Assembly: GCA_964247055.1 (NCBI GenBank)
Contig: OZ176054.1
Coordinates: 8,246,001 to 8,310,000, forward strand
DNA length: 64,000 nucleotides
Source of the DNA: Paragordius varius
Taxonomy: Eukaryota; Animalia; Nematomorpha
Direction: 5' to 3'
Part shown: in pieces, positions 3,053 to 64,000 of the stretch
Layout of the letters: each line of letters begins with the position of its first letter
Numbering within the stretch: the stretch's first letter is position 1
Program-made: the position numbers and the translations under genes
Notes under the pieces: model-generated
The model's input: the letters and a program-made list of their open reading frames with translations, nothing else
Told to the model about the DNA's origin: nothing
Database searches by the model: none

Positions 3053-3641
3053 ATGACCCGGGTAGAAAACGCTTGCTATTATAAAGATCTTCTATATCAT
3101 TCAACATTAGGCCAATTTAGTTTTGAAGAAATTAAAGCTCAAACAAAACCAATTACTGAAAATTTTAAAAAAAGACAAGAGCGTTTGTTAAAATTGTTAA
3201 TCCAATATTATAATAATCATAATGATCCAAAAGATTATTATCAACCCTTTTTTGAAAAATATTTAGATAAAATTGAAATGTCAGAATTGTTTGAAAATTA
3301 TATACGACAAAATATGACAATGGTCATAAATCATTTAAAAGAAGAACATGATCCTTATAAGGATAAAAATTTGCAAATAATTGAAATGTTTAAAAATGAT
3401 TTTATGGAAACAAATAATAGGTAACATTTTTTATATTTTAGAAAATTATTTAAAGCATTTGAAACTCAATGTACAGAAATTAAAAATCAATACATATTGG
3501 ATTTATTTGAAAAATTTCGAAGTTTAATTTAATTTATATCTTTAAGCTCAATACCCTGAATTCACACCTTTAGAAGTATCCAAAATTTACTATGTGCTTT
3601 TTTCAAATAACGAACAAGAAATCAATAAAAGAAAAGTATAA
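3053..3641 (+). CDS. Orphan protein-coding gene with two ultrashort introns; 5' end uncertain
   Basis: ORF 3053-3420 continues in frame through GT-AG introns 3421-3441 (21 nt, contains the stop) and 3522-3546 (25 nt) to TAA at 3641 (...RKLFKAFETQ...RTQYPEFTPLEVSKIYYVLFSNNEQEINKRKV). No family recognised. Open-frame pieces back to ~2729 do not join cleanly. Confidence 0.6.
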
Positions 3642-6361: not shown

Positions 6362-17958
<11,597 letters not shown>

Positions 17959-18592
17959 GTGTTGTAACACATTGAATTCGCACTGTAAGTTTTCACAGGT
18001 GACTTTCTATATTTGGGGTTTTGTAAATGGTACCCGGAGAATTTTAAGCAAAAACTATTAATGTTGTGTTAGTATATTAAACTTTATTTATCATACATTA
18101 TAATTATGCCATAACAACCATTTCATAAACAATATGCACATAATATTTTGGTGAAAACACTTAAATTATAATTGTAAAAATTTTTTTGGGAGAATATATG
18201 AGTCGAATTTTAATCTTACTTGTTTTATAAATAATGCTTAGTACCATATTTAACTGTCCTTCATTAATATAAATATTTATGAATATGAATTTTAGGATTT
18301 TTTGATTGTGCAAGCGTTTTTCAAAGAAATTTTTTTTGGAAAAATCTAATTTTTTATTTTTTTTAAATATTGTATTTTTAAAAATTCAGAGATTTTCTAC
18401 TTTGTAATTGCTTTGATACTTTCATATGCATTTGTAATTTTTTAAGATTTTTATTTTTAAAGGACTTTGCTATTATGCTTAAATAAACCAAAGAGAAGGG
18501 CTCAAGGCCGCCACGCTACAGAAAACAATTATTACTGTTTTAACGTTGTCTCGCCTTTTAGTATATTTAAAGTTTGACATGTGAATATAGCA
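17959..18592. promoter_or_regulatory. Divergent intergenic region, probable bidirectional promoter for Vps34 and NUDT18
   Basis: Only 634 bp separate the head-to-head start codons, with a small GC-richer patch at ~18495-18520. No TSS evidence. Confidence 0.45.
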
Positions 18593-21341
18593 ATGCGTGC
18601 TAAAAACTATAGGCAAGGCATTGATTCTCTGACAAATCTATTAAGCCAGAATATACCGAAAAAACGTGTAATATTTTTTTATTTTAGGATTGATTTTGAG
18701 AACAAATGTCTCCTATATTGTGTGTGCAATTATTATTCAAAAGGAACAAATATTATTAATGCAAGAAACAAAAAGGCATTTACAAAAGCGTTGGTATATT
18801 CCTGGTGGCAAAGTCGAATATCAAGAATCACTCACAGTATTTTTAATCATATTTTAGGATGCCCTTATAAGAGAAACTCTTGAAGAAACTGGAATAAAAT
18901 GCCTTCCTAAGGCTTTAATTAAAATTGAATGCGATAAAGGCAAATGGTTCAGGTTCATATATTTTTGTGAAGCCGTCGGTTTTATTTTTTTCAAATTTTA
19001 GGTGGAAAATTAAAAACGCATGAAAATAAACATTCTATGCAAGCAAAGTGGTTTGATTTGGATGAATTATCAAATTTATATATGAAGTTCTATTTAACTT
19101 TACATATAGATTCACTGATCTCCCGGATTTTGTTAATATCCCTTTTGACACATTTTCCAAATTGAAAAAGAAATTTACTATAATGCCTAAGCCTATCTCA
19201 CAACCCAACCTAATATTACATTTTTTAACATGTGTTAAAGTTGGGTAATTTAAAATAATACTAAATATTATATAAGTATGTATCTGAATTAGGGTTGTGC
19301 TGACCAACTCATGACCCGGTCTTGACCGGGTCATGACCAGGTCAGTGACTATTTATTTTTCGACCATGGTCATTTAAAGAAACAGCTGTTTTTTAAAAAT
19401 TGCTAGTAAATTTTTTTTGGAAGAGATAGTAAAATTTTATTGCTTTTTAATATACTTTTTAAAAAATATAAATTAAATATTTAAATATGCTTATTTACAA
19501 TATAAAATTGGTTAACATGCATCCTTATAACATTAGCATTTACATCCAGTTATTTTGAAAAACAATCAAGCATTTTGCAAAATATGCGATTATTTTATAT
19601 ATATGAACCAATAAAATGTAAAAACATTTTATAATTGGATATTTCAATGATGAAAAAAAGTGTAAAACAAACTAGGTAAAATTTTATTTGAAATATCCAG
19701 TATTAAAAGCTATGAATTTGAAGATTCAGAAGGCTACAAGAATGTAGCAAAATTTATTTCAAAACAAAATTCTTGATTAAATTTGATTGAATATATTGTA
19801 AATATAAAAAAATATATAAAATAAACTTTTAGAAAAAGCATCACATTATTAGTGAAACACAAGTGTCATTCGAACTTTATTTTCACATCCAATATCGCAT
19901 GGTATTTAAGGTAAAGTGGTCATAACCATGGTCTGACCGGGTCTGACTGGACTTTTTTTGAAAAAGCAGTCAAATGCACAACCCTAATCTGAATTCTATA
20001 TTATTTCGGTTTTATTTTTAATGTTTTTTTATAAAAATTTTGTTTTTTGTTGTTTTTAATATTTATTCTTAATAAAAGCAACTTTTCAATTTTGACGCGA
20101 TTTTGAACCAAAATACAGTCTATTAAACGATTTTGGAAACGTTTTTCGCCAATTTACGGTGAAATATATAGTATAAACATATGATTTATTGAAATAAAAC
20201 ATAAATATATTTTTTTATGTAAAATAGGTCGTTAATTTTAAAAATGGAATCATTGTTGAAAAAACGCATTCATATTTTTTAAAATTTCCGTAATGATTTG
20301 GAACTGTTTTCTTTTAAAAAATATCCGGAATTCTAACTTGGAACCGGACAATATAAAATATTTTCCAATTTCTCATTGTTATTTAACCACATTTCAATTT
20401 TAAAATACCTACTTTAATTGCAATATTAAATATAGAGGCAAAACAATAGGTGTATTGCTCAAAGATCAAAATATTCCTGCCCTTATAATCAACCATTCTT
20501 TTACTCATTTGTCCAAAATCGACGAATACATTAAGGTATATATTTCGTTTTCATTATTATGCCACCAATTTTTTACATAATAATTAAGTTAATTAATAAA
20601 TATAATTTTTACTGGAACAATTCTAATTTTTTGAAATATTTCATCTAATTTTAATGATATTAGAATATTTGGCTATTAGATCATTTAATCCTTAATCAAA
20701 TGATATTTCATAGAGATAAAACGAAATACAAAATTTTCAAAAAACAACCATACTGTTTAAACCTTTATTTTCCCTTATATCCCATTTAATTACAATTGTA
20801 AAATAAATTATTGATTGTTATATTTTACATTTCTATTTATTTTGCAGTTTAAAACAATGAGCTATAAAGTTCAAAAAGATTCTCTTTAAATATTTTACGT
20901 CTTGTCAGTATAAAACTTTTCCTTAAATTTTATGTATAAATGTCCATTTTTGTTGACCAACAACTTCTTTGTAATTTACTTTTTGTACATGTTTAACAGA
21001 GTTTATTAGCGATTGAACCACATCGCATTACACATCATGGTGTAATTCAAGTCCATCATACCCCTGCAAACGTACATAGGTTATCTCCCAATGGTCTGGC
21101 ATTAACTTATCTAATCTCAATTTCCTATGTAAAAAATCAATTTCCCGACGACGACGACCTCGTAATCAATAATATAGAGAACATTGCTAAATCAATTGTT
21201 AGCAATTCTGCTGCTGAATATCATATTGGGGACCCGTTTGTGGGAAAATGTGATTTTACCATCAAAAAATTTGTTAATCATTTTATAAAAAAATCGGCGT
21301 GCATTCCATTAACGTTTAACACGTTAAAAATTCCTTATTAA
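18593..21341 (+). CDS. NUDT18: Nudix hydrolase 18-like (8-oxo-dGDP phosphatase), ~334 aa
   Basis: Exons 18593-18665, 18688-18836, 18858-18978, 19002-19086, 19110-19244, 20436-20535, 21000-21341 (1005 nt). Nudix box GGKVEYQESLTDALIRETLEETGI. NUDT18-like context LRTNVSYIVCA, WYIPGG, WFRFIYFCEAVGGKLKT, SMQAKW. Confidence 0.88.
19290..19986. mobile_element. Non-autonomous hAT element, copy 2, in NUDT18 intron 5
   Basis: TIR TAGGGTTGTGC...GCACAACCCTA. Perfect 8-bp TSD ATCTGAAT (19282-19289, 19987-19994). Confidence 0.92.
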
Positions 21342-22601
21342 TAAATACAATAGATAAAGTATATCATATTTATTTATTAAGTTACGCTTTTAGGGATTAA
21401 GTTGTTGATTTTTTACGAAAGTTTTGTAGGGACCTTTTTGAGTCTTTTTATTTTTAATTTGAGCGAATAGACGATGATAAATTGAAAGAGATTGAGCATT
21501 ATAAATTAGATTTAAAAGCTCTAACAAGTAGTTCCTTTAAAACACGGCACACAACGATCACAAAAGATCTAAAAAAACGCAATATTGATGTTAAATACGG
21601 TTACAACCTCAAAATATGGAAGAAATAAATATATTAGACACTCGTTATTGAGTACCCTGATTAAGGTTTTAAATTAAATGTAGATTTGCGCGGTTTGATC
21701 TATTAAAACAATTTTAAACCTATATTTAAACATTTTCTCTATTTTATATCGTAAAATCTAGTTTTGTAATTTTCAGATGGAACCAAAGGTTATATACCCC
21801 AAAAAACAATATAACTTTAGGGATAAAAAGACCATTTGTAATATATATATATATATATATATATATCGTTTCAAAACACTTTTCCGTTCTTTTTAGAAAA
21901 AATTGATAAAATATCATAATTTATTTTCATTTTACAACAATTAATTATGTCGCATAATAATATTCATACACCATAAATATATATATAAACAACCGCCGTA
22001 AATATGTATTCAGTTGAAAATTTATAATGATATAATATGGATTATTTCACGGGGTAGGGGTACGATAATACATTATATAAGTTTTATAATGACTATAATT
22101 CACATTGATATCTATTTTCAATGAAATTTTTACATAAATATTTAAAATAAATATATTTATCAATAAAAATAATAAAATTAATCATGTACCTTTAAATTTA
22201 AATGGAAAAAATTTAATGTGTGAAAAAAAAATCGTTTCTAACTAAAGTATGCACACACAGACACATCTTTTAAAGAACTAATGATACTTTAATAAAATAT
22301 ATTTTATAAAAATTGAATTATATACTACTTTATTAATTGGAATTTATATTTTGTTTACTTTTAATAAATTGTATAATTCAATAAATTGCACCATTACATT
22401 CTCCAAATGGCTGGTAGTACTAAAAATGTTAGAATACTTTCTTGTTTAAAACAATATATTATTATTATTGTTGTTGTTGTTTAAATATCCCTGTAAATTT
22501 TAAATATTTTTGAAACTGTTGAAATTCAATGCTTTAACAGTGCCGGTTTTGTTGTCGTGTTTAAGATTTTAGAATCGGCATATGAGGTGATAAAATAATG
22601 A

Positions 22602-22829
22602 TTAGAAATCTACAAATTCTTTTTGACATTTTTCAGATGTTGAAATTCGGAAAGGTATCCAGGTATCCAGAAAAGGGTGTGGCAGGCATGGTCCCAACCG
22701 CCACTGTCCGCACAGGACGACCCTTACCGCCTTCCTGCGCTTTTACACGCTTCAGGGCTCCTCATCGTAATCATCAAAGTTGGATGCATCACCTGGTCCT
22801 TTGAATTTGGGAATGAAAGGTGCTTCAAT
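22602..22829 (-). pseudogene. Duplicate PKA-C terminal exon disrupted by a 102-bp insertion
   Basis: Same exon as 25945-26070 ([24 protein letters not shown]...KEFVDF*). The insert at 22657-22758 introduces TGA after DEEP. Confidence 0.9.
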
Positions 22830-23825
22830 CTATTCATTAAAATATTTTTGTGTTTTTGCAAAAAATGAACAAAAATATATGTAATTTTAGGTAATCACTA
22901 TATTAACCAAATATTTTCAAACATCTGTTTATTACTATTTCAAGTTTATGATTTTTTGTGACATGAATAAAAAATTTGCCAGGATAAAATAATACATAAG
23001 ATTTCGAAAAAATAATTTAACATTTACCATATTAAAAAAAATTATTTTATTGTTAACTGCTGTCAAAAAAAATCTGTCCAAACAAAAAACTTTTTAATAG
23101 TTATACCGGTAAGTAATATATGGTAAATTTTTGAAAGTTTAATAAATAAATTAAAAATTGTCCCGTAGTGTGATGTTAACGCAATACACAATAAATTTAT
23201 CCCCAAATTAAAGAAAGGCAAAATATATTTTAAATTAAATGAATTATTTTATAATCCATTTAATTTATTGTCTTAACAACTTTGTAATAAGCTGTATATA
23301 AATGTTATAATTTACACGATCCAGTATTAAAAGCTATGAATTTGAAGATTCAGAAGGCTACAAGAATGTGGCAAAATTTATTTCAAAACAAAATTCGGTT
23401 TTATTTTTAATGTTTTTTTTATAAAAATTTTGTTTTTTGTTGTTTTTAATATTTATTCTTAATAAAAGCAACTTTTTAATTTTGACGCGATTATGAACCA
23501 AAATACAGTCTATTAAACGATTTTGGAAACGTTTTTCGCCAAGTTACGGTGAAATATATAGTATAAGCATATGATTTATTGATATAAAACATAAATATAT
23601 TTTTTTGTGTGAAATAGGTCGTTAATTTTTAAAATAGAATCATTGTTGAAAAAACGCATTCATATTTTTTAAATTTCCCGAATCATTTGGAACTGTTTTC
23701 TTTTAAAAAATATCCGATATTCTAACTTGGAACCGGACAATAAAATATTTCCCAATTTCTCATTGTTATTTAACCACATTTCATACTCACTTTAATTGCA
23801 ATATTAAGTTATTAATTATATATAG

Positions 23826-24676
23826 AGGTAAAACAATAGGTGTATTGCTCAAAGATCAAAATATTCCTGCCCTTATAATCAACCATTCTTTTACTCATTT
23901 GTCCAAAATCGACGAATACATTAAGGTATATATTTCGATTTCATTATTATGCCACCAATTTTTTACATAACATATTTTATTTAGTTTCAATAATATTAGA
24001 ATATTTGGCTATTAGATCATTTATTCCTTAATTGAATGTTATTTAAAGTCATAGAGATAAGACGGAGAACAAATTCAAAAGACAACCATACTTTTACCTT
24101 ATTTTTCCCTTATACAATTGTAAAATAACCACTTGATTGTTATAAATTACATTGCTATTTTTTGAGTTTAAAACAATGAGTGAGCTATATTTAAAAATTA
24201 AAGTTCAAAAGTATGGTTGTTTTTGACAAAATATTTTTTTTATATATTACGTTTTGTCAGTATAAAACTTGTTTAAATTTCAATATTTGTTGACCAACCA
24301 ACTGCTTTGCAATTTACTTTTTGTATATGTTTAATAGGGGTTATTAGCGATTAAACCACATCGCATTACACATCATGGTATAATTCAAGTCCATCATACC
24401 CCTGCAAACGGACATAGATTATCTCCCAATGGTCTGGCATTAACTTACCTAATCTCTATTTCCTATGTAAAAGATCAATTTCCCGACGACCCCCTCGTAA
24501 TCAATAATATGGAGAACATTGCTAAATCAATTGTTAGCAATTCTGCTGCTGAATATCATATTGGGGACCCGTTTGTGGAAAAATGTGATTTTACCATCAA
24601 AAAATTTGTTAATCATTTTATAAAAAAATCGGCGTGCGTTCCATTAACGTTTAACGCGTTAAAAATTCCTTATTAA
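23826..24676 (+). pseudogene. Duplicate NUDT18 last two exons (open frame, splice sites intact; use unknown)
   Basis: 23826-23925 and 24338-24676 keep AG/GT sites and an open frame to TAA. There is one in-frame codon deletion and the substitutions are mostly non-synonymous. Confidence 0.7.
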
Positions 24677-25314
24677 TAAATACAATAGATAAAATATATC
24701 ATATTTATTTATTAAGTTACGCTTTTAGAGATTAAGTTGTTGATTTTTTATGAAAGTTTTGTTGGGAACTTTTTAAGTGTTTCTTATTTTTAATTTGAGC
24801 GAATAAACGATGATAATATTTTGAAAGAGATTCAGAATTATAAATTAGATTTAAAAGCTCTAACAGGTCGTTCCTTTAATACACGGCACACAGCGATCAC
24901 AAAAGATCTAAAAAACGCAATATTTATGTTAAAGACGGTTACAACCGCAAAATATGGAAGAAATAGTTATATCAGACACTCGCTATTAAGTACCCTGATT
25001 AAGGTTTAAAATTAAATGTAGATTTGCGCGGTTTGATCTATTAAAACAATTTTAAACCACCTATATTTAAACATTTTCTCTATATTATATCGTAAAATCT
25101 AGTTTTGTAATTTTCAGATGGAACCAAAGGTTATTTACCCCAAAAAACAATATAACTTTAGGTATAAAAAGACCAGAGTAAAAAGGAGCTTTATATAATA
25201 TATATATATCGTTTCAAAACACTTTTCCGTTCTTTTTAGAAAAAATTGATAAAATATCATATTTATTTTCATTTTACAACAATTAATTATGTCGCATAAT
25301 AATATTCATACACC

Positions 25315-25345
<31 letters not shown>

Positions 25346-25944
25346 AACAACCGCCGTAAATATGTATTCAGTTGAAAATTTATAATGATATAAAATGGAT
25401 TATTCACGGGGTAGGGGTACGATAATACACTATATAAGTTTTATGACTATAATTTACATTGATATCTATTTTCAATGAAATTTTTACATAAATATTTAAA
25501 ATAAATATATTTATCAATAAAAATAATAAAATTAATCATGTACCTTTAATTTAAATTTAAATGGAAAAAATTGAATGTGTGAATAAAATAGTTCTAACTA
25601 AAGTATGCACACACAGACACATCTCTTAAAGAACTAATGATACTTTAATAAAATATATTTTATAAAAATTGAATTATATACTACTTTATTAATTGGAATT
25701 TATATTCTGTTTACTTTTAATAAATTGTATAATTCAATAAATTGCACCATTACATTCTCCAAATGGCTGGTAGTACTAAAAATGTTAGAATACTTTCTTG
25801 TTTAAAAACTATTATTGTTGTTGTTTAAATATCCCTGTAAATTTTAAATATTTTTCAAACTGTTGGAATTCAATTCTTTTATAGTACTGGTTTTGTGTCG
25901 TGTTTAAGATTTTAGAATCGGCATATGAAGTGATAAAATAATGA

Positions 25945-35533
<9,589 letters not shown>

Positions 35534-47927: not shown

Positions 47928-48992
47928 ATGAAACGTAAATCGTCGTTTATTTTAAGCAAATCCAAAAAACAAAAATTATCTAATATTCATTCACAAGCAA
48001 CTCAATTAGAGACTCATCAAACATCTTTTAAGAAAAATGATCCCACATATAAAATGGGATTACAAAATAAGGTTGTTGAATATGGTTCAAATAAATGTAT
48101 TAATGGAAAACCAAAGAATTCAGAAACAACTGATATCAAAGTAGTTTCCAAAGGTATCAAGAGAAAAGCTGAAACCCTAAAATGGAACAATATAAAAACT
48201 GCTCAAAAATTTAAAGCTCGACAATCTCACCGAGGTGTCAAAGATAGTAAATCCAAAGGTCCTTTGTGTGGAAATAGTGAAAATCGAAAGAAAACTCCCA
48301 CAAAACAAGTAAGAAAAGCAAACACTAACCGCAAAAAGATAAAAATAATGAATAGTGATATAAATTTGGATAATCGAACCTCAAACTCAAACATGAGAGG
48401 ATCCCGTCAAAACCAATGTTTAGAATTAGAGACAGTAATTAATGTACCAAATATCAAAAATGAAAAAGAAATTAAAGCATCAGCACTGCAAAACGTAGAA
48501 GAGCCTACAATATCAAAGCAGCAAATTATTTCAAAGGAAGATGAAACCCCAATAAGCTATAAATGCCTCCGTGGCAAAAATAAAGTGAGAAAATCGATTG
48601 GAGATAGAGTGTCCGCATATAATACCCATCGAGTGATTAGCGGGAAATCCTATACTTATCGTTCAAGCGTGTGGAGAACTCAGTCTGCGGAGCGGAAATC
48701 TCCCATTCCAACAACCAAGAAATTAAATATTATGTGTTCAAAGTAAGGGCTAACTTTTTTATTAAGTATCATTTAACAGTTATAACTAAACACATTCACT
48801 TGTAGATGTAAATGTTCCTACCTCGGAAATCCAAATTCGAAAGACGATCTGCCGTACATTAGAAGGAGGCGCGGAAGAATTTTTACCGAGCCAGTACCTA
48901 TCTGCCCGTTGCCCGGTCAGGAAAACAGACATTATCTGTCAGACTTAATGGGTCCCAATTGTTTGGCGCCCATCTTTTCTTCCCACTTTTAA
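47928..48992 (+). CDS. Lys/Arg-rich orphan protein, paralog 1 (~333 aa)
   Basis: Exon 1 47928-48742, 63-nt GT-AG intron, exon 2 48806-48992 (…MCSKCKCSYLG…RRRRGRIF…CPLPG…). No family recognised. Confidence 0.75.
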
Positions 48993-51408: not shown

Positions 51409-52451
51409 ATGAAGCGTAAATCATCTATTATTTTAATTAAAACAAAAAATATCTCACATCCAAACGAAAGCATCCTAATTAATGGTTCAACCGGCAAAAC
51501 TGAGTAAAAAGCTAGCATCCCTTAATAAAAAGAAATACAAAAACATAAAAGATAAAGTTGTTGAGAAAAAGAGTTTGAAGGACCAAACTTTTGCAAAAAA
51601 GCCAAAGAAATCGATAAAAACTGAAATCGGAAAAAGAAAAGCGGAAACTCCAAAATGGACCATTAAAAAAGCTATTACTTGTCAATCTAAAAGAGACGAA
51701 GGCCGATTTAAATTTCTTTTGTGTGAAAATAATAAAAATCGAAAGAAAACTCCCACAGAACCAGTAAAGAAAGCAAGCACTAACCGCAAAAAGAGAAAAA
51801 CAATTAATGATGATATAAATTTGCCTAATCAGACCTCAAATTCAAACATGAGAGCCCCACGTCAAAACCAGTGTTTAAAAATAGAGTCAGTAAACATAAT
51901 TAATGTATCAAATATCAAAAATAAAAAAGAAATTAAAGAATCAGCAACGCAAAACGTAGAAGAGCCTTCAATATCAAAGCAGCAAATTATTTCAAAAAAA
52001 GATTACGCTCCAATAAGCGATAAATACCTCCGTGGCAAAAATGAAGTGAGAAAATCGATTGGAGATAGAGTGTCCGCATATAATACCCATCGAGTGATTA
52101 GCGGGAAATCCTATACTTATCGTTCAAGCGTGTGGAGAACTCAGTCTGCGGAGCGGAAATCTCCCATTCCAACAACCAAAAAATTAAATATTATGTGTTT
52201 AAAGTAAGGGATAACTTTTTTAATTAAGTATCATTTAACAGTTATAACTAAACACATTCACTTGTAGATGTAAATGTTCCTACCTCGGAACAAATTCGAA
52301 AGACGATCTCCCGTACATTAGAAGGAGGCGCGGAAGAATTTTTACCGAGCCAGTACCTATCTGTCCGTTGCCCGGTCAGGAAAACAGACGTTATCTGCCA
52401 GACTTAATGGGTCCCAATTGTTTGGCGCCCATTTTTTCTTCCCACTTTTAA
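51409..52451 (+). CDS. Lys/Arg-rich orphan protein, paralog 2 (5' frameshift; ~301 aa from ATG 51482)
   Basis: The homologous start MKRKSS at 51409 is out of frame by 1 with the long ORF 51482-52203. 64-nt intron, exon 2 52268-52451 open. Confidence 0.65.
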
Positions 52452-56548: not shown

Positions 56549-59500
56549 ATGACTAATCAAAACGAGGCCCTAAACTTTTTTTTAATATTCGGAGCTTCCG
56601 TATATAATATTTTTATATATTAGGGTGACTTAGCTAAGAAGAAAATATATCCAACATTATGGTATACCGATTTTAAATATTAAAGGGAGTTATTTTCCAA
56701 GAAATTGTTGCCAATAAATATTTATATTGTTGGTTATGCGCGAAGTCAATTAACAGTCGAACAAATAATGGAACATTGTGAAAAATTTATGAAAGTATTT
56801 TATGTTTTATTGAAGGATAAACCAAAAGAAAATTGTGAAGATTTTAGAAACTTTGTAAAGCGCAATTACTATGTTCGGGGAAATTATGATAGCGATGAGC
56901 ATTTTGAAAAGCTGAATCAAGAATTAGATAGTTTTACAAAACAAATTATTGAGAAAAAAATGTATGAATCTCATGATGGACGAGTCAATCTTTATGATCA
57001 AGAAGCCGAAGAAACTATAAAAAAGGCTGAAGCCAATCACGAAGAAAATCCACATAAATATTGTGTTAATATTGAAACACTTGATACTTTAACATCAGAC
57101 TCGCATAATGGTACATAACGATTACTCATATTTTTGATTAACATTGGTTATTATAACGGGTATTCAATTATTATAATCCATGATTTATGTTTTAATAACA
57201 TTAATAACAAAATTTATATTTCGTCCAAATTTATTTTGGTGTTTGTTTTTATTAACAAAGGTATATAGTCAATTATTTCTTTTTCTATTATTATATGTAT
57301 GCGGAATCTCAAAATTATTACTCAATCAAAAATTATTTTAGACAAATTAAAAGCCTCATGCGGTGATCCAGATCATAATTGTGGTTCTCAAAAATCAGGA
57401 CCCATGGGTGATTCTTCTAATACAGAGGACAAAACAAGTCAAAATATGTCACAAGGATATAATGGTATTCAAGTCAATCATTTATTCTATCTTGCCCTAC
57501 CCCCTAACGTTTATGCAACGGTTACATCTATGATCAGAAAACATTGTATGAGTAAATGGTAATAATTATAATTTTCTTCCAAAATACTTTATTATTACAA
57601 GTATAAATACGGTTAAAAAATATTTTTAATTACATGGATTATTAGAAAATTATATTGCCCCATACATTACATGCTATATAAATGACATTTTTTATATTTT
57701 CTGAGTTTTTTATCTATTTGACGTTAAGATTCTTTAGATATCAAATAATTATCATCATTATCCGCATATCTTTGCATAACCCGAGGTTTATTTCCGTTTT
57801 ATTTTTTGTCATGGCGTTTAACACTTGCACACCACACATTCATTTCAGTTCTTCGATTAAAATTGGGGCAGTTGGATACCCCAGGAATATTAAAAATTAA
57901 TTATTTCAATATGGAATGAATTAGAACCATGGCAAAAGTTTGCACTTATATAACATTAATGAACCGAAATATAAAAAATATTTATTCAATTATAACATAT
58001 TAAGAGATAAAACCCAAAGGTGAAAATTTAGCCAACCTGGTATGTGTGCATTAGCTAAATATAAATGCAATATATACCACTTTTTTGTATATAACAATGT
58101 TATATGTGATTTAATTAAGTACACTTAATTTTGGCCTTAGAATCAAATAAACAAGATATATTGCAATAATGTTGTAAAATAAATCGGCGTCTATGTAGTT
58201 TTATACGAAACTTTTTTTAAAACTAAATTTTCAGATAATTTGGCGTTTTTATATAATTTACATTAGGATAGAAGCATAAATTTAAGTTGAAACCGTTTCT
58301 TTCAGTAGTTTTTAATATTATCAACTTAAATATTGTTTGGGGTATTTAAATACCCCAATTTGAACATATACTACATTATAGCGATTTCTTCGTTATAACT
58401 CCAAAATTCATTTTGTTTTTTATGATAAGTTAAATTTGTTAAAAATAGTATGTATTTTATACATCTGGTATAATAGGGCACTATTAAACTAGAAAATATT
58501 TATATTCGACAAACAATAAAAATCTTAATGTCGTTTATAGGGGATGGAATCGACTAATTATAGAGAAACCATTTGGTCGAGATTCGGAAAGTTCAAACAA
58601 GCTCTCTGCTCACATCTCTAACCTTTACAATGAATGCCAGATCTATCGAATAGATCATTATTTGGGCAAGGAAATGACACAAAATATGTTGATTACACGG
58701 TATTGAATTCAATTTTTTTGACAATTTAAGATAATTTTTAAGTTTATTTTGAGGTTAGTTTCAGTTTTCTAAATTAATGTTATAATAATATTTTTTTTCC
58801 AAAATATATATATATACATCTTTCCCGCCATGTCATTTCTATTAATAATTAGCTTCACGAATCGAATATTTTGTTCATTGTGGAATCGGGATAATATTGC
58901 GTCTGTAATGATTAGCTTTAAAGAAGACATTGGTACAGAAGGCAGAGCTGGTTACTTTGACCAATATGGTATAATCAGGTAATCAATAAATTTATTTATC
59001 ATAAGAAAATGCCAAAGTTTTCATATATTTCCTCAATTTATATAGTTGATAAATACCCTTTTAATTGAAATCGATTATTTTATAGTAATTTTTTTAGAGA
59101 ATAAAATAATTTTTAGATAATATCTATTTTTTATCGATGTTTTTTTGAATAAATCCCTATATTTTTATTGTATAATATAATATAATATAGAGATGTTATG
59201 CAAAATCACATTTTACAATTATTATGCGTAACAGCTATGGACAAACCCGTTTCTCTTAGTGCTGATGATATCAGAAATGAAAAGGTAAAACTGTTAATTT
59301 TAATGCTTGGTTTCAGCATTAAGCATTTATTTTTTCATTTAAAGATAAAATAATTTTTTGGTTACAAATAATTGGCTTGTTAATAGACGATGATGAATAT
59401 TTAATTTATTTTATATGATAAAAAAATACTTACCATTTTTAATTTTTTAACAATATCATCATTATTTGTTACCTATCCATTTTTTGCCGTAATTTTGACT

Positions 59501-61436
59501 TAGAAAAAAATGTTTAAACTTTTTTCTGTTTTGATATAATAAATTATAGGTACGAGTGTTGCGTTGTATCAAAGGTATAAATTCTAGCGATGTAGTCCTG
59601 GGCCAATATGTAGGAAATCCGGAGTATAATGCTCAAACTGCCAAGGCCTCTTCCCAAGGCACTGAAGATCAGAGTAAGGCTTACACGGATGATCCTAAAA
59701 TCGATAAGGGCTCAGTTACACCCACATTCGCTACCTGTGTTCTCTTTATAAACAATGAACGATGGGACGGTGTCCCTTTCATACTAAAGTGTGGGAAAGG
59801 TACATACATTGTTTTTTATCTCGCTTTAATTTTGTCTCTAAATGGTAATGTCTAAAATGTTTTCGCTAATTATATTTTGTATCGATATTTAACCATGCAT
59901 ACCCTACTAGGTTTTTATTCAAGTCTATTTGTTTTTCGCTAAAAAGAAAAAACTCTATAAATCTAAAAGTATAGTTTAGAATTTTTATTTCTTAAAAATT
60001 TGAGGGTCTTTTAATTGGCGTATAGATAAAAATTGTTCTTATATAAACGCTACATAAGACAAATATTTTCCCTATCTTTTAATTTAAATATTCATTTAAA
60101 AGTTGCTTAAAAAGGAATGTCTCTCAAATTCTTATTAAACTCTCTTTACCAAATCTATCAAATGATAAACTAATTAATTTTGATCCAATACAATATTTTT
60201 AACTTGTCTGAATATTAATACATCATTGTGTTAGCCCTAAATGAACGTACCACATATATTCGTATCCAATTTCGGGATGTTGCCGGCGATATTTTCCCAA
60301 ATGGAGCGATTAAACGTAATGAACTTGTTATTCGGGTTCAACCACACGAAGCGGTTTACCTCAAAATTATGACAAAAGAACCGGGAATGCATTGTCATGT
60401 GCTTGAAACCGAGCTTGATTTAACTTTTAGTCGTCGATATAAAGTAATTAGAGCATTTTGAAAGGGGAAATTTAATTACTTTCAATAATAAATCATTTGG
60501 AGTAGGAGTAAAATACATTGCTATTTTCGATTAAACATTGACATTTATTATTTAAAATTAAAAAAAGAAACGTTAGTGCTTTCATGAATCCTAAGTGCGA
60601 CTTATGTCCTCACGCTTAAATTAGAAGGCAGGCATAAGATTTTAGAAACAAGTATTTTATTTTAGAAATCATTGAATTTTTTTACTAAAATTTAAAATAA
60701 TCAATAATATCTAATCATTATCATCCCTTTTTAAATAACGGAAATTAGGATTACTAAATATCCAAAATATATGTGGAGATATTATTCCATTTTTTAAGTA
60801 TTCATGCATTTTTTAACTTTGGCAGAAATAAAATAGGTTTTTTTATGTGTTTAGGGTGCACCAATGCCAGATGCGTATGAAAGATTGATAGTTGATGCTT
60901 TCCTAGGAAATCAACTCAATTTCGTTAGGACAGATGAATTAGCTGAGGCATGGAGAATATTTACACCTTTATTGCACAAAATTGAACGAGAAAAAATTAA
61001 GCCCATACCTTACGTTTTTGGCAGGTTTTTATCTTATTTTTCCAAAAAATATTTTAAATATTAATGTTTAAAGGTATGAATAAGGTCGGATCCTACCAAT
61101 CAATGGATAACTTTTAATAATAACCAGAAAATTTTAAAATCATTTTATTACAGGATTATAATGTATAAATAACATTGGTTTAATTTTGACACTTTTAAAA
61201 AGGAACGGTTAACTTTATTTTATAGTCTAGTAACCACATTTTAGTTAAATTAATGGTAATATTTCGTTTATGATTGACTACATTTATAAGTCTTTATTGC
61301 TTCATATAAATTCAACCTATACAAAATCATTAGCCGTGGTCCTAAAGAATCTGATGAGTTAGCTAAAAAATATGGGTTTATATTCACTGGTACATATATG
61401 TGGAAAGAACCCGTGGAAGAATGTAAAAAATCTTAA
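56549..61436 (+). CDS. G6PD: Glucose-6-phosphate 1-dehydrogenase, ~606 aa
   Basis: Exons 56549-56599, 56624-56661, 56686-56794, 56816-57110, 57342-57558, 58541-58699, 58853-58978, 59191-59284, 59550-59799, 60235-60443, 60855-61024, 61334-61436 (1821 nt). Motifs [67 protein letters not shown]. Confidence 0.97.
57822..58364 (-). mobile_element. piggyBac-like MITE, diverged copy 4 in G6PD intron 5
   Basis: TTAA-CACTT end at 57818-57826. The other end is truncated after taccccaatttgaa. Confidence 0.7.
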
Positions 61437-61793: not shown

Positions 61794-61961
61794 TTATAAG
61801 ATTTCGTGTATGCATTTGTCGATTTGTGGCAATATTGCACCAATTTTAGTATCAATTTTGATGTTGGCCAAATGATCCCCTCTTGTTTCACCAATATTTA
61901 TGATTGCAATGGGTTTTCCTGCTTTGTGAAATTCATAAACAATTCTGTAAGCGGAATACAT
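61794..61961 (-). CDS. SIRT4: Terminal exon of a sirtuin-4-like gene (upstream exons not found in window)
   Basis: AG|MYSAYRIVYEFHKAGKPIAIINIGETRGDHLANIKIDTKIGAILPQID…* resembles the SIRT4 C-terminus (YSGYRF…PIAILNIG.TR.D.LA..K…G..LP.ID). Confidence 0.78.
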   Translation of the reverse strand: MYSAYRIVYEFHKAGKPIAIINIGETRGDHLANIKIDTKIGAILPQIDKCIHEIL

Positions 61962-62988
61962 CTAAAAAGTAATGAAAAAGAAAGTTTTTTACAGATTTTT
62001 TTAGAATTCTTGATAATATAAAAAAAATACTGAATAAAAAGAGTAATGACATTTCTAAAAGCTAATAGTCTAGCGTTAAAATTGGTAAAATATTGGTTCG
62101 CCAATTGATAAACGCATTTTTACATAGTAATAATAATACCTCAGGACTGGATCGAAAAGCTTTAAATTTTAAACTAACTTAGTCATACTTAACTTACGCG
62201 GTTGTAAAATCAATAGATAAAAAGAATAAACGAATTTCCATATTATCTAAATATTTTATGTGCATTACATAAACTACTAAACTCAAATAAAGTCGCATTT
62301 TATTTATATCCTAACAAGTAGTGCAATCATTTCAAGGTAAGGTTCCTATCTCTGTAAAATACACCATCATGTATATATAACTTGGCTTCGAAGCTATAAA
62401 TCGCCCATGTATGCGACTATATTATTTTAATAAAGTTGATTTTTTTCTTAATAGCAAAAACTTAGGAGCCTTTTACAAATAAACTCTATGGTCCCAACCC
62501 TTGTCCACTACCATATAAATATAAAGAGCTTTGTAGCGCAAAACTTAAAAAATCATATAGATTTAAAAATGGTTTAATAATTCCCGTTTATGCTAAATTA
62601 AAATTTCTTTAAATTAGCCGATTGTTAGCGGCCCATTCTATGAATAACAATTTAATTCACACAACATGCAAAAATATCATATGGTCAATTAAATGAATCA
62701 AATACGGGAAGTTAATGAGCTCATTCCCTAAATTAGTTCTATAGGATTTACTCATTCGCATGGACTATAGCTTATGAGGGAACATATGTTTAAGGGAGGT
62801 TAATGAGTTTTTGAGGCGGTAATTTTAATTTTTTTTATCAATATGATGGATAACACTTCTGTACGCGATTTATGTGTAGGTCTTATTAAAAATTATTTAT
62901 AGATATCCGTGCATCTTTATGAATACCGTAAATAAATTTAGCAATGGCCAAAAGCTTTAGGCCTGGAAGGCTTTACCCAAAGAAATGG

Positions 62989-63618
62989 CCGATTTGGGAT
63001 ACAAACAACCAAGAGATATATGACAATATTCTTGAATTAAGCGCAAGCATGACCTGGCCCGTAGGACGGGGAATTAGGCTTCCCCCAAACGTGCAATTTA
63101 ATACATAACCACAAATCGCCGAAAATAGAAATCTACCTGGGGGTAGACTATCCCTTTATTCTATAATAAATCATTTTTTTTCATATTTAAAATAGACTGG
63201 AACCGGTGGGATACACACCTTCACATACAGAAATATAATTAGTATGATGTTCTACTAAAATTAAATAAAAAATACGGGATTTGGAGGGACAGGCTGTGTC
63301 ATTAAAATTATTATTTTAAGAATTAACATTTGTTTCTAAAAAGGACCATAAAACTAAATATAATGGATATACTCGCTCACATGCATAATATATTTATTTC
63401 TACATTTATTTAATATAAATACCTTTTCTAAACGCCGCTACTCTACCCCCAGGTTTCTATTTTTTGGCGATTTGCGGTAACGCATTAAATTACATATTCA
63501 TTTTTTGTCTGAGAAGTTTGGCGGAAGCCTAATTCCCCGTCCTACGGGCCAGGTCATGCTTGCGCATAATGCAAGAATATTGTCATACATCTCTTGGTTG
63601 TTTTGTATCCCAAATCGG
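62989..63618. mobile_element. Long-TIR (~160 bp) foldback/MULE-like element
   Basis: Arms 62989-63147 and 63442-63618 are high-identity reverse complements (e.g. gcatgacctggcccgtaggacggggaattaggcttcc). ~295-bp spacer, no TSD found. Confidence 0.8.
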
Positions 63619-64000
63619 GAAAATATTTGTATGACATATTCATGATTCGAAAAAAATATATATCAGCACCTATTATATTTAAAAATATTATGGTGCTTAA
63701 TAGCACGTACACCCCTTTTAAAGTTGGCATGTCCCATATACATACTATAGTAAAATAAGTTATTTATCTGACCATTTATTGCATAAATATATAAAAAAGC
63801 ACCAAAACCTAATAACCTTTAGTGAGCATTTGCACGAAAAATATTTTTTGATACAAGTTTAAACTTTCCATAACCTACCATATACATATATTAAATTTTT
63901 TTTTATTCAGGCTTATAGTTTTCAGATTCCAAAAATTATTTCTGATTCTCGAGATATCTGTTTTTGTAAAACCTTAATCCGGAAAACCCAGGCTCAAAAA

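Follow-up and report, generated by a model that had tools for sequence, protein, structure and literature searches.

Introns of only 21–25 nt are found in a 64,000-nt stretch of hairworm DNA (hereafter the window), and in the three conserved genes that carry them they are confined to the 5' end, ahead of introns up to the kilobase range in the same gene. This confinement, which was absent from the initial annotation, is the most informative feature of the tiny introns. Judging from homologous proteins and intron positions, the segments are very probably spliced out, and they probably go back to old introns of the major (U2) class which deletions cut down to 21–25 nt in a hairworm lineage.

The window has a G+C content of 26 % and harbours, besides much repeated DNA, the following genes, whose models yield frames without stops under the standard genetic code after intron removal: (i) an orphan gene (start at 3053, + strand) with two candidate tiny introns of 21 and 25 nt, (ii) Vps34/PIK3C3 (6362–17958, − strand; 18 exons, 978 aa) with introns of 21 and 24 nt followed by fifteen of 115–2617 nt, introns 10–12 being the less certain part of the model, (iii) NUDT18 (18593–21341, + strand; 7 exons, 334 aa) with introns of 22, 21, 23, 23, 1191 and 464 nt, (iv) the PKA catalytic subunit (25945–29650, − strand) with nine downstream exons, eight introns of 86–688 nt, none of them tiny, and an unplaced first exon, and (v) G6PD (56549–61436, + strand; 12 exons, 606 aa) with introns of 24, 24 and 21 nt followed by eight of 153–982 nt. 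Vps34 and NUDT18 are arranged head to head with 635 nt separating their start codons. The NUDT18 model is based on exon-wise PDB matches to NUDT18 and on six intron positions common with Gordionus; an end of this gene near 19200 was ruled out, as two further long introns (1,191 and 464 nt) follow and the gene extends to 21341.

Among the 44 introns modelled in the window, 11 measure 21–25 nt, none 26–85 nt and 33 between 86 and 2617 nt; the median of this window sample, which is not a genome-wide one, is ~240 nt, with 11 of 44 introns under 30 nt. The bimodal size distribution described in the initial annotation is reflected by the empty 26–85-nt class (n = 44), but its figure of at least 63 nt for all other introns needs correction, since the shortest long intron has 86 nt and a 63-nt intron was not found in the window. 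That genes with tiny introns carry kilobase introns as well, as also annotated, applies to NUDT18 (1191 nt) and Vps34 (up to 2617 nt).

All nine tiny segments previously annotated in NUDT18, Vps34 and G6PD are present (21–24 nt, GT-AG ends), and reading frames, homologue gaps and common intron positions agree with the earlier view that their removal is needed to restore the conserved proteins. NUDT18 intron 1 (18666–18687, + strand, 22 nt, phase 1), retention of which would shift the frame, has a phase-1 counterpart at most 2 alignment columns away in Gordionus (42 nt), Mytilus (2552 nt) and Ephydatia (66 nt). Intron 2 (18837–18857, +, 21 nt, phase 0) contains an in-frame stop and does split the Nudix box, as had been proposed: the segment falls into a 7-residue gap in all 19 of 19 full-length NUDT18 homologues, the flanking exons match residues 15–60 and 63–99 of solved NUDT18 in exon-wise PDB searches, and introns occupy the identical column and phase in Gordionus (40 nt), Glandiceps (1210 nt), Mytilus (1205 nt) and Ephydatia (59 nt). 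Retention of intron 3 (18979–19001, +, 23 nt, phase 1) or intron 4 (19087–19109, +, 23 nt, phase 2) would again shift the frame; identical columns and phases are used in Gordionus (38 nt), Salminus (171 nt), Glandiceps (188 nt) and Mytilus (7294 nt) for intron 3 and in Gordionus (37 nt), Glandiceps (807 nt) and Mytilus (799 nt) for intron 4. For these comparisons, NUDT18 proteins were mapped onto their own genomic loci, Gordionus, Mytilus, Glandiceps, Salminus and Ephydatia representing a hairworm, a mussel, a hemichordate, a fish and a sponge, respectively.

In Vps34, intron 1 (17745–17765, − strand, 21 nt, phase 1) contains an in-frame stop and lies between exon 1, weakly similar to residues 9–68 of solved Vps34 (E 0.65), and exon 2, which resumes at residue 73. 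Intron 2 (17605–17628, −, 24 nt, phase 0) is in frame without a stop and corresponds to an 8-residue gap relative to solved Vps34. In G6PD, introns 1 (56600–56623, + strand, 24 nt, phase 0) and 2 (56662–56685, +, 24 nt, phase 2) each contain an in-frame stop; intron 3 (56795–56815, +, 21 nt, phase 0), in frame and free of stops, coincides with a 7-residue gap relative to solved G6PD. In a G6PD locus of another genome (L001), the junctions of the window's introns 1, 2 and 3 are occupied by introns of 157, 943 and 2203 nt, respectively, and the exons between them are 38 and 109 nt long in both. The two segments annotated in the orphan gene are likewise present with GT-AG ends (3421–3441, +, 21 nt, in-frame stop; 3522–3546, +, 25 nt, frameshift) and are candidate introns by their sequence. 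Searches for homologues of near-query length were blank for an orphan exon and for a Vps34 exon.

All 11 tiny introns are bounded by GT-AG, and at the nine homology-defined sites such ends would arise by chance with a probability of ~1e-19, five registers per site being allowed. No frame-compatible alternative GT/GC-AG pair exists within 12 nt for eight of the 11; the other three have one longer alternative each (30, 30 and 35 nt), which would remove aligned codons. If retained, seven of the nine segments in conserved genes would introduce a frameshift or an in-frame stop. Removal yields stop-free frames of 335 (NUDT18), 979 (Vps34) and 607 codons (G6PD). It is very improbable that the segments are not spliced at all, i.e., that they represent assembly errors, belong to genes in decay or are inserts kept in the mRNA and translated via recoding. 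Such a reading could draw on the facts that the mapped sequencing runs are DNA, that look-alike motifs are common and that 17605–17628 and 56795–56815 are in frame without a stop, so that retention may at times be possible. It conflicts with the GT-AG ends at the nine sites and the ancient intron positions, with the recurrence of the segments in independent DNA contigs, and with the state of NUDT18, Vps34 and G6PD, three housekeeping genes that are otherwise intact without any further stop or frameshift. A lax motif scan returned 113 tiny-intron look-alikes in the window; the motif on its own is too unspecific, and the case for the tiny introns therefore rests on homology. One 23-nt GT-AG look-alike (30250–30272, − strand) shortly precedes an ATG at 30239 on the 5' side of the PKA exons in the model; PKA could thus possess a tiny 5' intron as well.

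Four sequencing runs mapped over 16300–21400 cover introns and repeats, with no GT-AG joints among those listed, and are hence DNA. Runs X3–X5 had been considered as RNA, containing 27–38 % of the window's words, i.e., about the exonic share; this was rejected since mapping on 16300–21400 showed DNA. In the RNA-like runs X6–X10, next to none of the window's sequence words are present. DNA contigs from three samples span tiny introns, one differing from the window in 13 letters (18700–19089) and another in 2 (17430–17799), both with 0 gaps. The segments recur in these independent contigs and are thus not assembly errors, and their length is kept, with no gaps, in haplotypes that diverge by 2–4 %. 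Overall, haplotype contigs differ from the window in ~2–5 % of letters across 16300–21400, with indels of 15–34 letters in long introns and intergenic DNA. In one contig over 18816–19190, 6 letters are missing, and 19089 is the common endpoint of contigs from three runs; the variant suggested at ~19090 could either shorten NUDT18 intron 4 to 17 nt or remove two codons from exon 5.

Within the two genes compared, position and phase are common to other genomes for all tiny introns (NUDT18 4/4, G6PD 3/3). Their positions thus mark them as old introns reduced in size rather than new insertions. Minor-class signals, i.e., the RTATCCTT donor and the CCTTAAC branch box, are absent from all 11. The best full-length match of the NUDT18 protein is XP_065325233.1 from Gordionus sp. 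(Nematomorpha). Identity over 120 columns of the Nudix domain is 53 % with Gordionus compared to 36–43 % with 16 other animals, and the NUDT18 tree places Gordionus as sister to the window sequence (support 100/98); this kinship is that of one gene in a tree with no sequence identified as nematode or arthropod, and in which the window and Gordionus sequences are both AT-rich and long-branched. All six NUDT18 intron positions are common to the window and Gordionus (XP_065325232.1; L002 10001–11198). Match, tree and intron positions favour a nematomorph source other than Gordionus itself, and a dicyemid, orthonectid or myxozoan source was discarded on these grounds. In this one gene, the sizes in Gordionus are uniform (42, 40, 38, 37, 38 and 40 nt) without a switch between 5' and 3' introns, whereas those of the window are tiny and then long (22, 21, 23, 23, 1191 and 464 nt). 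If 40 nt were the ancestral size, which one gene cannot show, the lineage of the window would have changed intron size in both directions. The Gordionus genome paper makes no mention of introns, and no report on hairworm intron sizes was found in the literature searched, which left most subscription papers outside.

The tiny introns always come first: they are the initial four of six introns in NUDT18, two of 17 in Vps34 and three of 11 in G6PD (joint P ~3e-6 under random order). In these three conserved genes, 9 of the 10 introns starting less than 500 nt from the ATG are tiny as compared to 0 of 24 beyond, with the qualification that the 500-nt cut was set after the data had been seen, that introns within one gene are not independent and that three genes with known starts contribute. 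The exception is Vps34 intron 3, which begins at +427 yet is 320 nt long. Donors of tiny introns match U1 at 4.0 of 9 positions on average versus 5.8 for long introns (P 4e-4), and a G at donor position −1 is present in 4 of 11 tiny versus 25 of 33 long introns. A G at position +5 is rare in both classes (1/11 short, 4/33 long). The interiors of the tiny introns have a G+C content of 8–16 %, exons one of 33–36 % and long introns one of 22–23 %. An A is located at −7 before the AG in 7 of 11 tiny introns, no more often than expected by chance (P 0.28 after shuffling), and within −6 to −9 in 11 of 11.

These observations may be accounted for by a largely conventional major spliceosome which would excise the tiny introns by intron definition, i.e., by recognizing donor and acceptor across the intron. 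The U-rich interior would serve also as pyrimidine tract, and a branch A few bases upstream of the AG would produce a ciliate-like lariat loop of ~13–18 nt. Less surely, a transcript would accommodate tiny introns with weak donors only up to ~500 nt from its start, where the cap-binding complex and the promoter-proximal polymerase may assist U1 loading, while downstream introns would require stronger donors and greater length and would grow via repeat insertion. The cap-binding complex is known to assist U1 where the donor lies close to the cap, and in Drosophila the donors of first introns are weaker (PMC4889658). The ciliate Stentor coeruleus splices introns of 15–16 nt with all snRNAs kept, the branch A being at position 10, six bases from the end, and the lariat measuring 10 nt (PMC9505925). 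In myxobolids, U2AF1 and U2AF2 are retained together with the part of U2 that reads the branch site (PMC13644364). Taken together, splicing of 15-nt introns in Stentor and retention of U2AF and U2 in myxobolids imply that a size of 21 nt forces no new machine. Several points count against the account: (i) short and 5' coincide, so that the weak donors may stem from intron definition rather than from position, (ii) the cap is known to aid mainly the first donor, but NUDT18 has four successive tiny introns, and (iii) Vps34 intron 3 at +427 has 320 nt and the introns of Gordionus NUDT18 are uniformly 37–42 nt. As a whole, i.e., shrunken U2 introns, conventional spliceosome, intron definition and cap-proximal tolerance combined, the account is given an even chance. 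A wider proposition, that minimum intron size is set by transcript position through a cap- or promoter-coupled mode for tiny introns, with hairworms as third animal group and first moulting animal, is put forward as tentative and on balance doubtful.

A purely mutational origin of the 5' pattern, to which we assign a minor share of probability, would leave the introns real and conventionally spliced; promoter-proximal chromatin would favour small deletions and bar transposons, e.g., where recombination is centred on promoters and the mending of its breaks yields small deletions, and gene bodies would gain repeats. Repeats do reside in several long introns. NUDT18 intron 5 (19245–20435, + strand, 1191 nt; Gordionus counterpart 38 nt) is largely high-copy repeat, depth over ~19207–20061 being ~150–500x the single-copy level (run X4) and further copies being present in the window; intron 6 (20536–20999, +, 464 nt; Gordionus counterpart 40 nt) contains high-copy repeat near 20746–20916, Vps34 intron 5 does so at 16300–16640, and repeats of G6PD intron 5 and of PKA intron 8 recur at other sites. 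A mutational origin would likewise suit the boundary near 430–650 nt, which is distance-like as expected of a chromatin domain, and the fact that the 5' introns of NUDT18 are shorter and its 3' introns longer than those of Gordionus. However, although an intron of 22–40 nt offers insertions a small target, all 32 downstream introns have at least 86 nt, and most downstream introns are without a repeat shared within the window. Moreover, no step in GC or CpG marks the first 500 nt of genes in the window, and mutation alone leaves the weaker donors unexplained.

An altered spliceosome as suggested in the initial annotation, in which changed U1/U6 pairing, trimmed branching factors or a bypass of U2AF (e.g., SPF45/RBM17) would permit 21-nt substrates, does not follow from intron size by itself and is unlikely. 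Precedents point in its direction, as the human A complex spans 79–125 nt and short human introns require SPF45 (bioRxiv 10.1101/784868), and as the branching factors of Stentor are trimmed of some parts facing the active site (PMC9505925); the scarcity of G at donor position +5 would also fit. Against this, myxobolids reach medians of 22 nt with conserved U2 and U2AF (PMC13644364), and a changed machine alone would not restrict tiny introns to 5' ends. Neither snRNA nor splicing-factor genes were recognised within the 64-kb window, and Rfam returned nothing at gathering score there.

With respect to known systems, the placement of these introns far below the usual animal minimum in the initial annotation has to be qualified, as their size class has already been published for myxobolids (PMC13644364) and Dicyema (PMC6543705). 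A survey from 2026 that covered 51 animal genomes attributes introns below 30 nt only to myxobolids and dicyemids (PMC13644364), with median sizes down to 22 nt for myxobolids (22–27 nt genome-wide). The window resembles the myxobolids Henneguya salminicola, Thelohanellus kitauei and Myxobolus rasmusseni, as described there, in GT-AG introns below 30 nt, ancient positions, reduced motifs, clustering of short introns and a parasitic host lineage (PMC13644364). It differs in that the myxobolid median of 22–27 nt is genome-wide and cnidarian, whereas the present ecdysozoan has a median of ~240 nt in the window, with tiny introns only at gene starts. With Dicyema sp. and D. japonicum it shares spliceosomal introns of 21–27 nt and a conserved exon-intron structure; these spiralians, however, have a median intron of 27 nt (PMC6543705), two thirds of introns below 30 nt and a mean of 38 nt, and a 5' confinement was not found for dicyemids in the accessible sections of both reports (PMC6543705, PMC6736024).

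The layout recalls that of the fluke Opisthorchis felineus, where short introns near the transcription start and kilobase introns downstream led to a proposal of intron definition, but the microintron peak there is at 37 nt with stronger splice sites than in long introns, as opposed to 21–25 nt and weaker donors here (PMC6530080). As in Stentor, the introns are AU-rich with GT-AG ends, leave no room for a separate branch site and pyrimidine tract, and often follow a last exon base other than G; in contrast to Stentor with exclusively tiny introns and a fixed branch A, long introns coexist here and an A at −7 is present in 7 of 11 (P 0.28) (PMC9505925). The hairworm is a probable third animal lineage with such introns, joining myxobolid-like size with fluke-like layout. 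If true, this would be the third independent origin of sub-30-nt animal introns, differing from myxobolids and dicyemids in that a single gene combines tiny with kilobase introns and that a relative has 40-nt introns at identical sites. A single genome could then serve to test the lower size limit of animal introns and the tie of intron definition to the transcript start. On the practical side, default minimum intron sizes in gene finders and aligners would break the 5' ends of genes in a genome of this kind, which can inflate apparent gene loss.

Further features were observed in the window. At 15795–16139 in Vps34 intron 5, a GIY-YIG endonuclease fragment was detected (Pfam E 3e-4); together with the high-copy repeat of this intron, it looks as if derived from a Penelope-like element. 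Vps34 has ~90 additional residues in the helical region (~12400–13600), and G6PD contains an insertion of ~90–100 residues in the NADP-binding domain (~56930–57470), interrupted by a 231-nt intron. A tandem duplication (20005–22656 versus 23394–25999, 87.6 % identity) includes NUDT18 exons 6–7; just past it, similarity between 22756–22842 and 25997–26083 involves the terminal exon of PKA, which is convergent to NUDT18. In the gene models, NUDT18 terminates in the first duplicate copy and PKA in the second.

The stretch 61797–61961 (− strand) is presumably, by resemblance, the last exon of a SIRT4-like sirtuin, although it has no Pfam match and upstream exons were not found in the window. Two related lysine-rich ORFs within repeated DNA (47928–48746, 272 aa; 51482–52207, 241 aa) have no Pfam match and are probably transposon-related. 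Finally, similar sequences at ~62930–63160 and ~63480–63660 form an inverted pair, much like the termini of a small DNA transposon.
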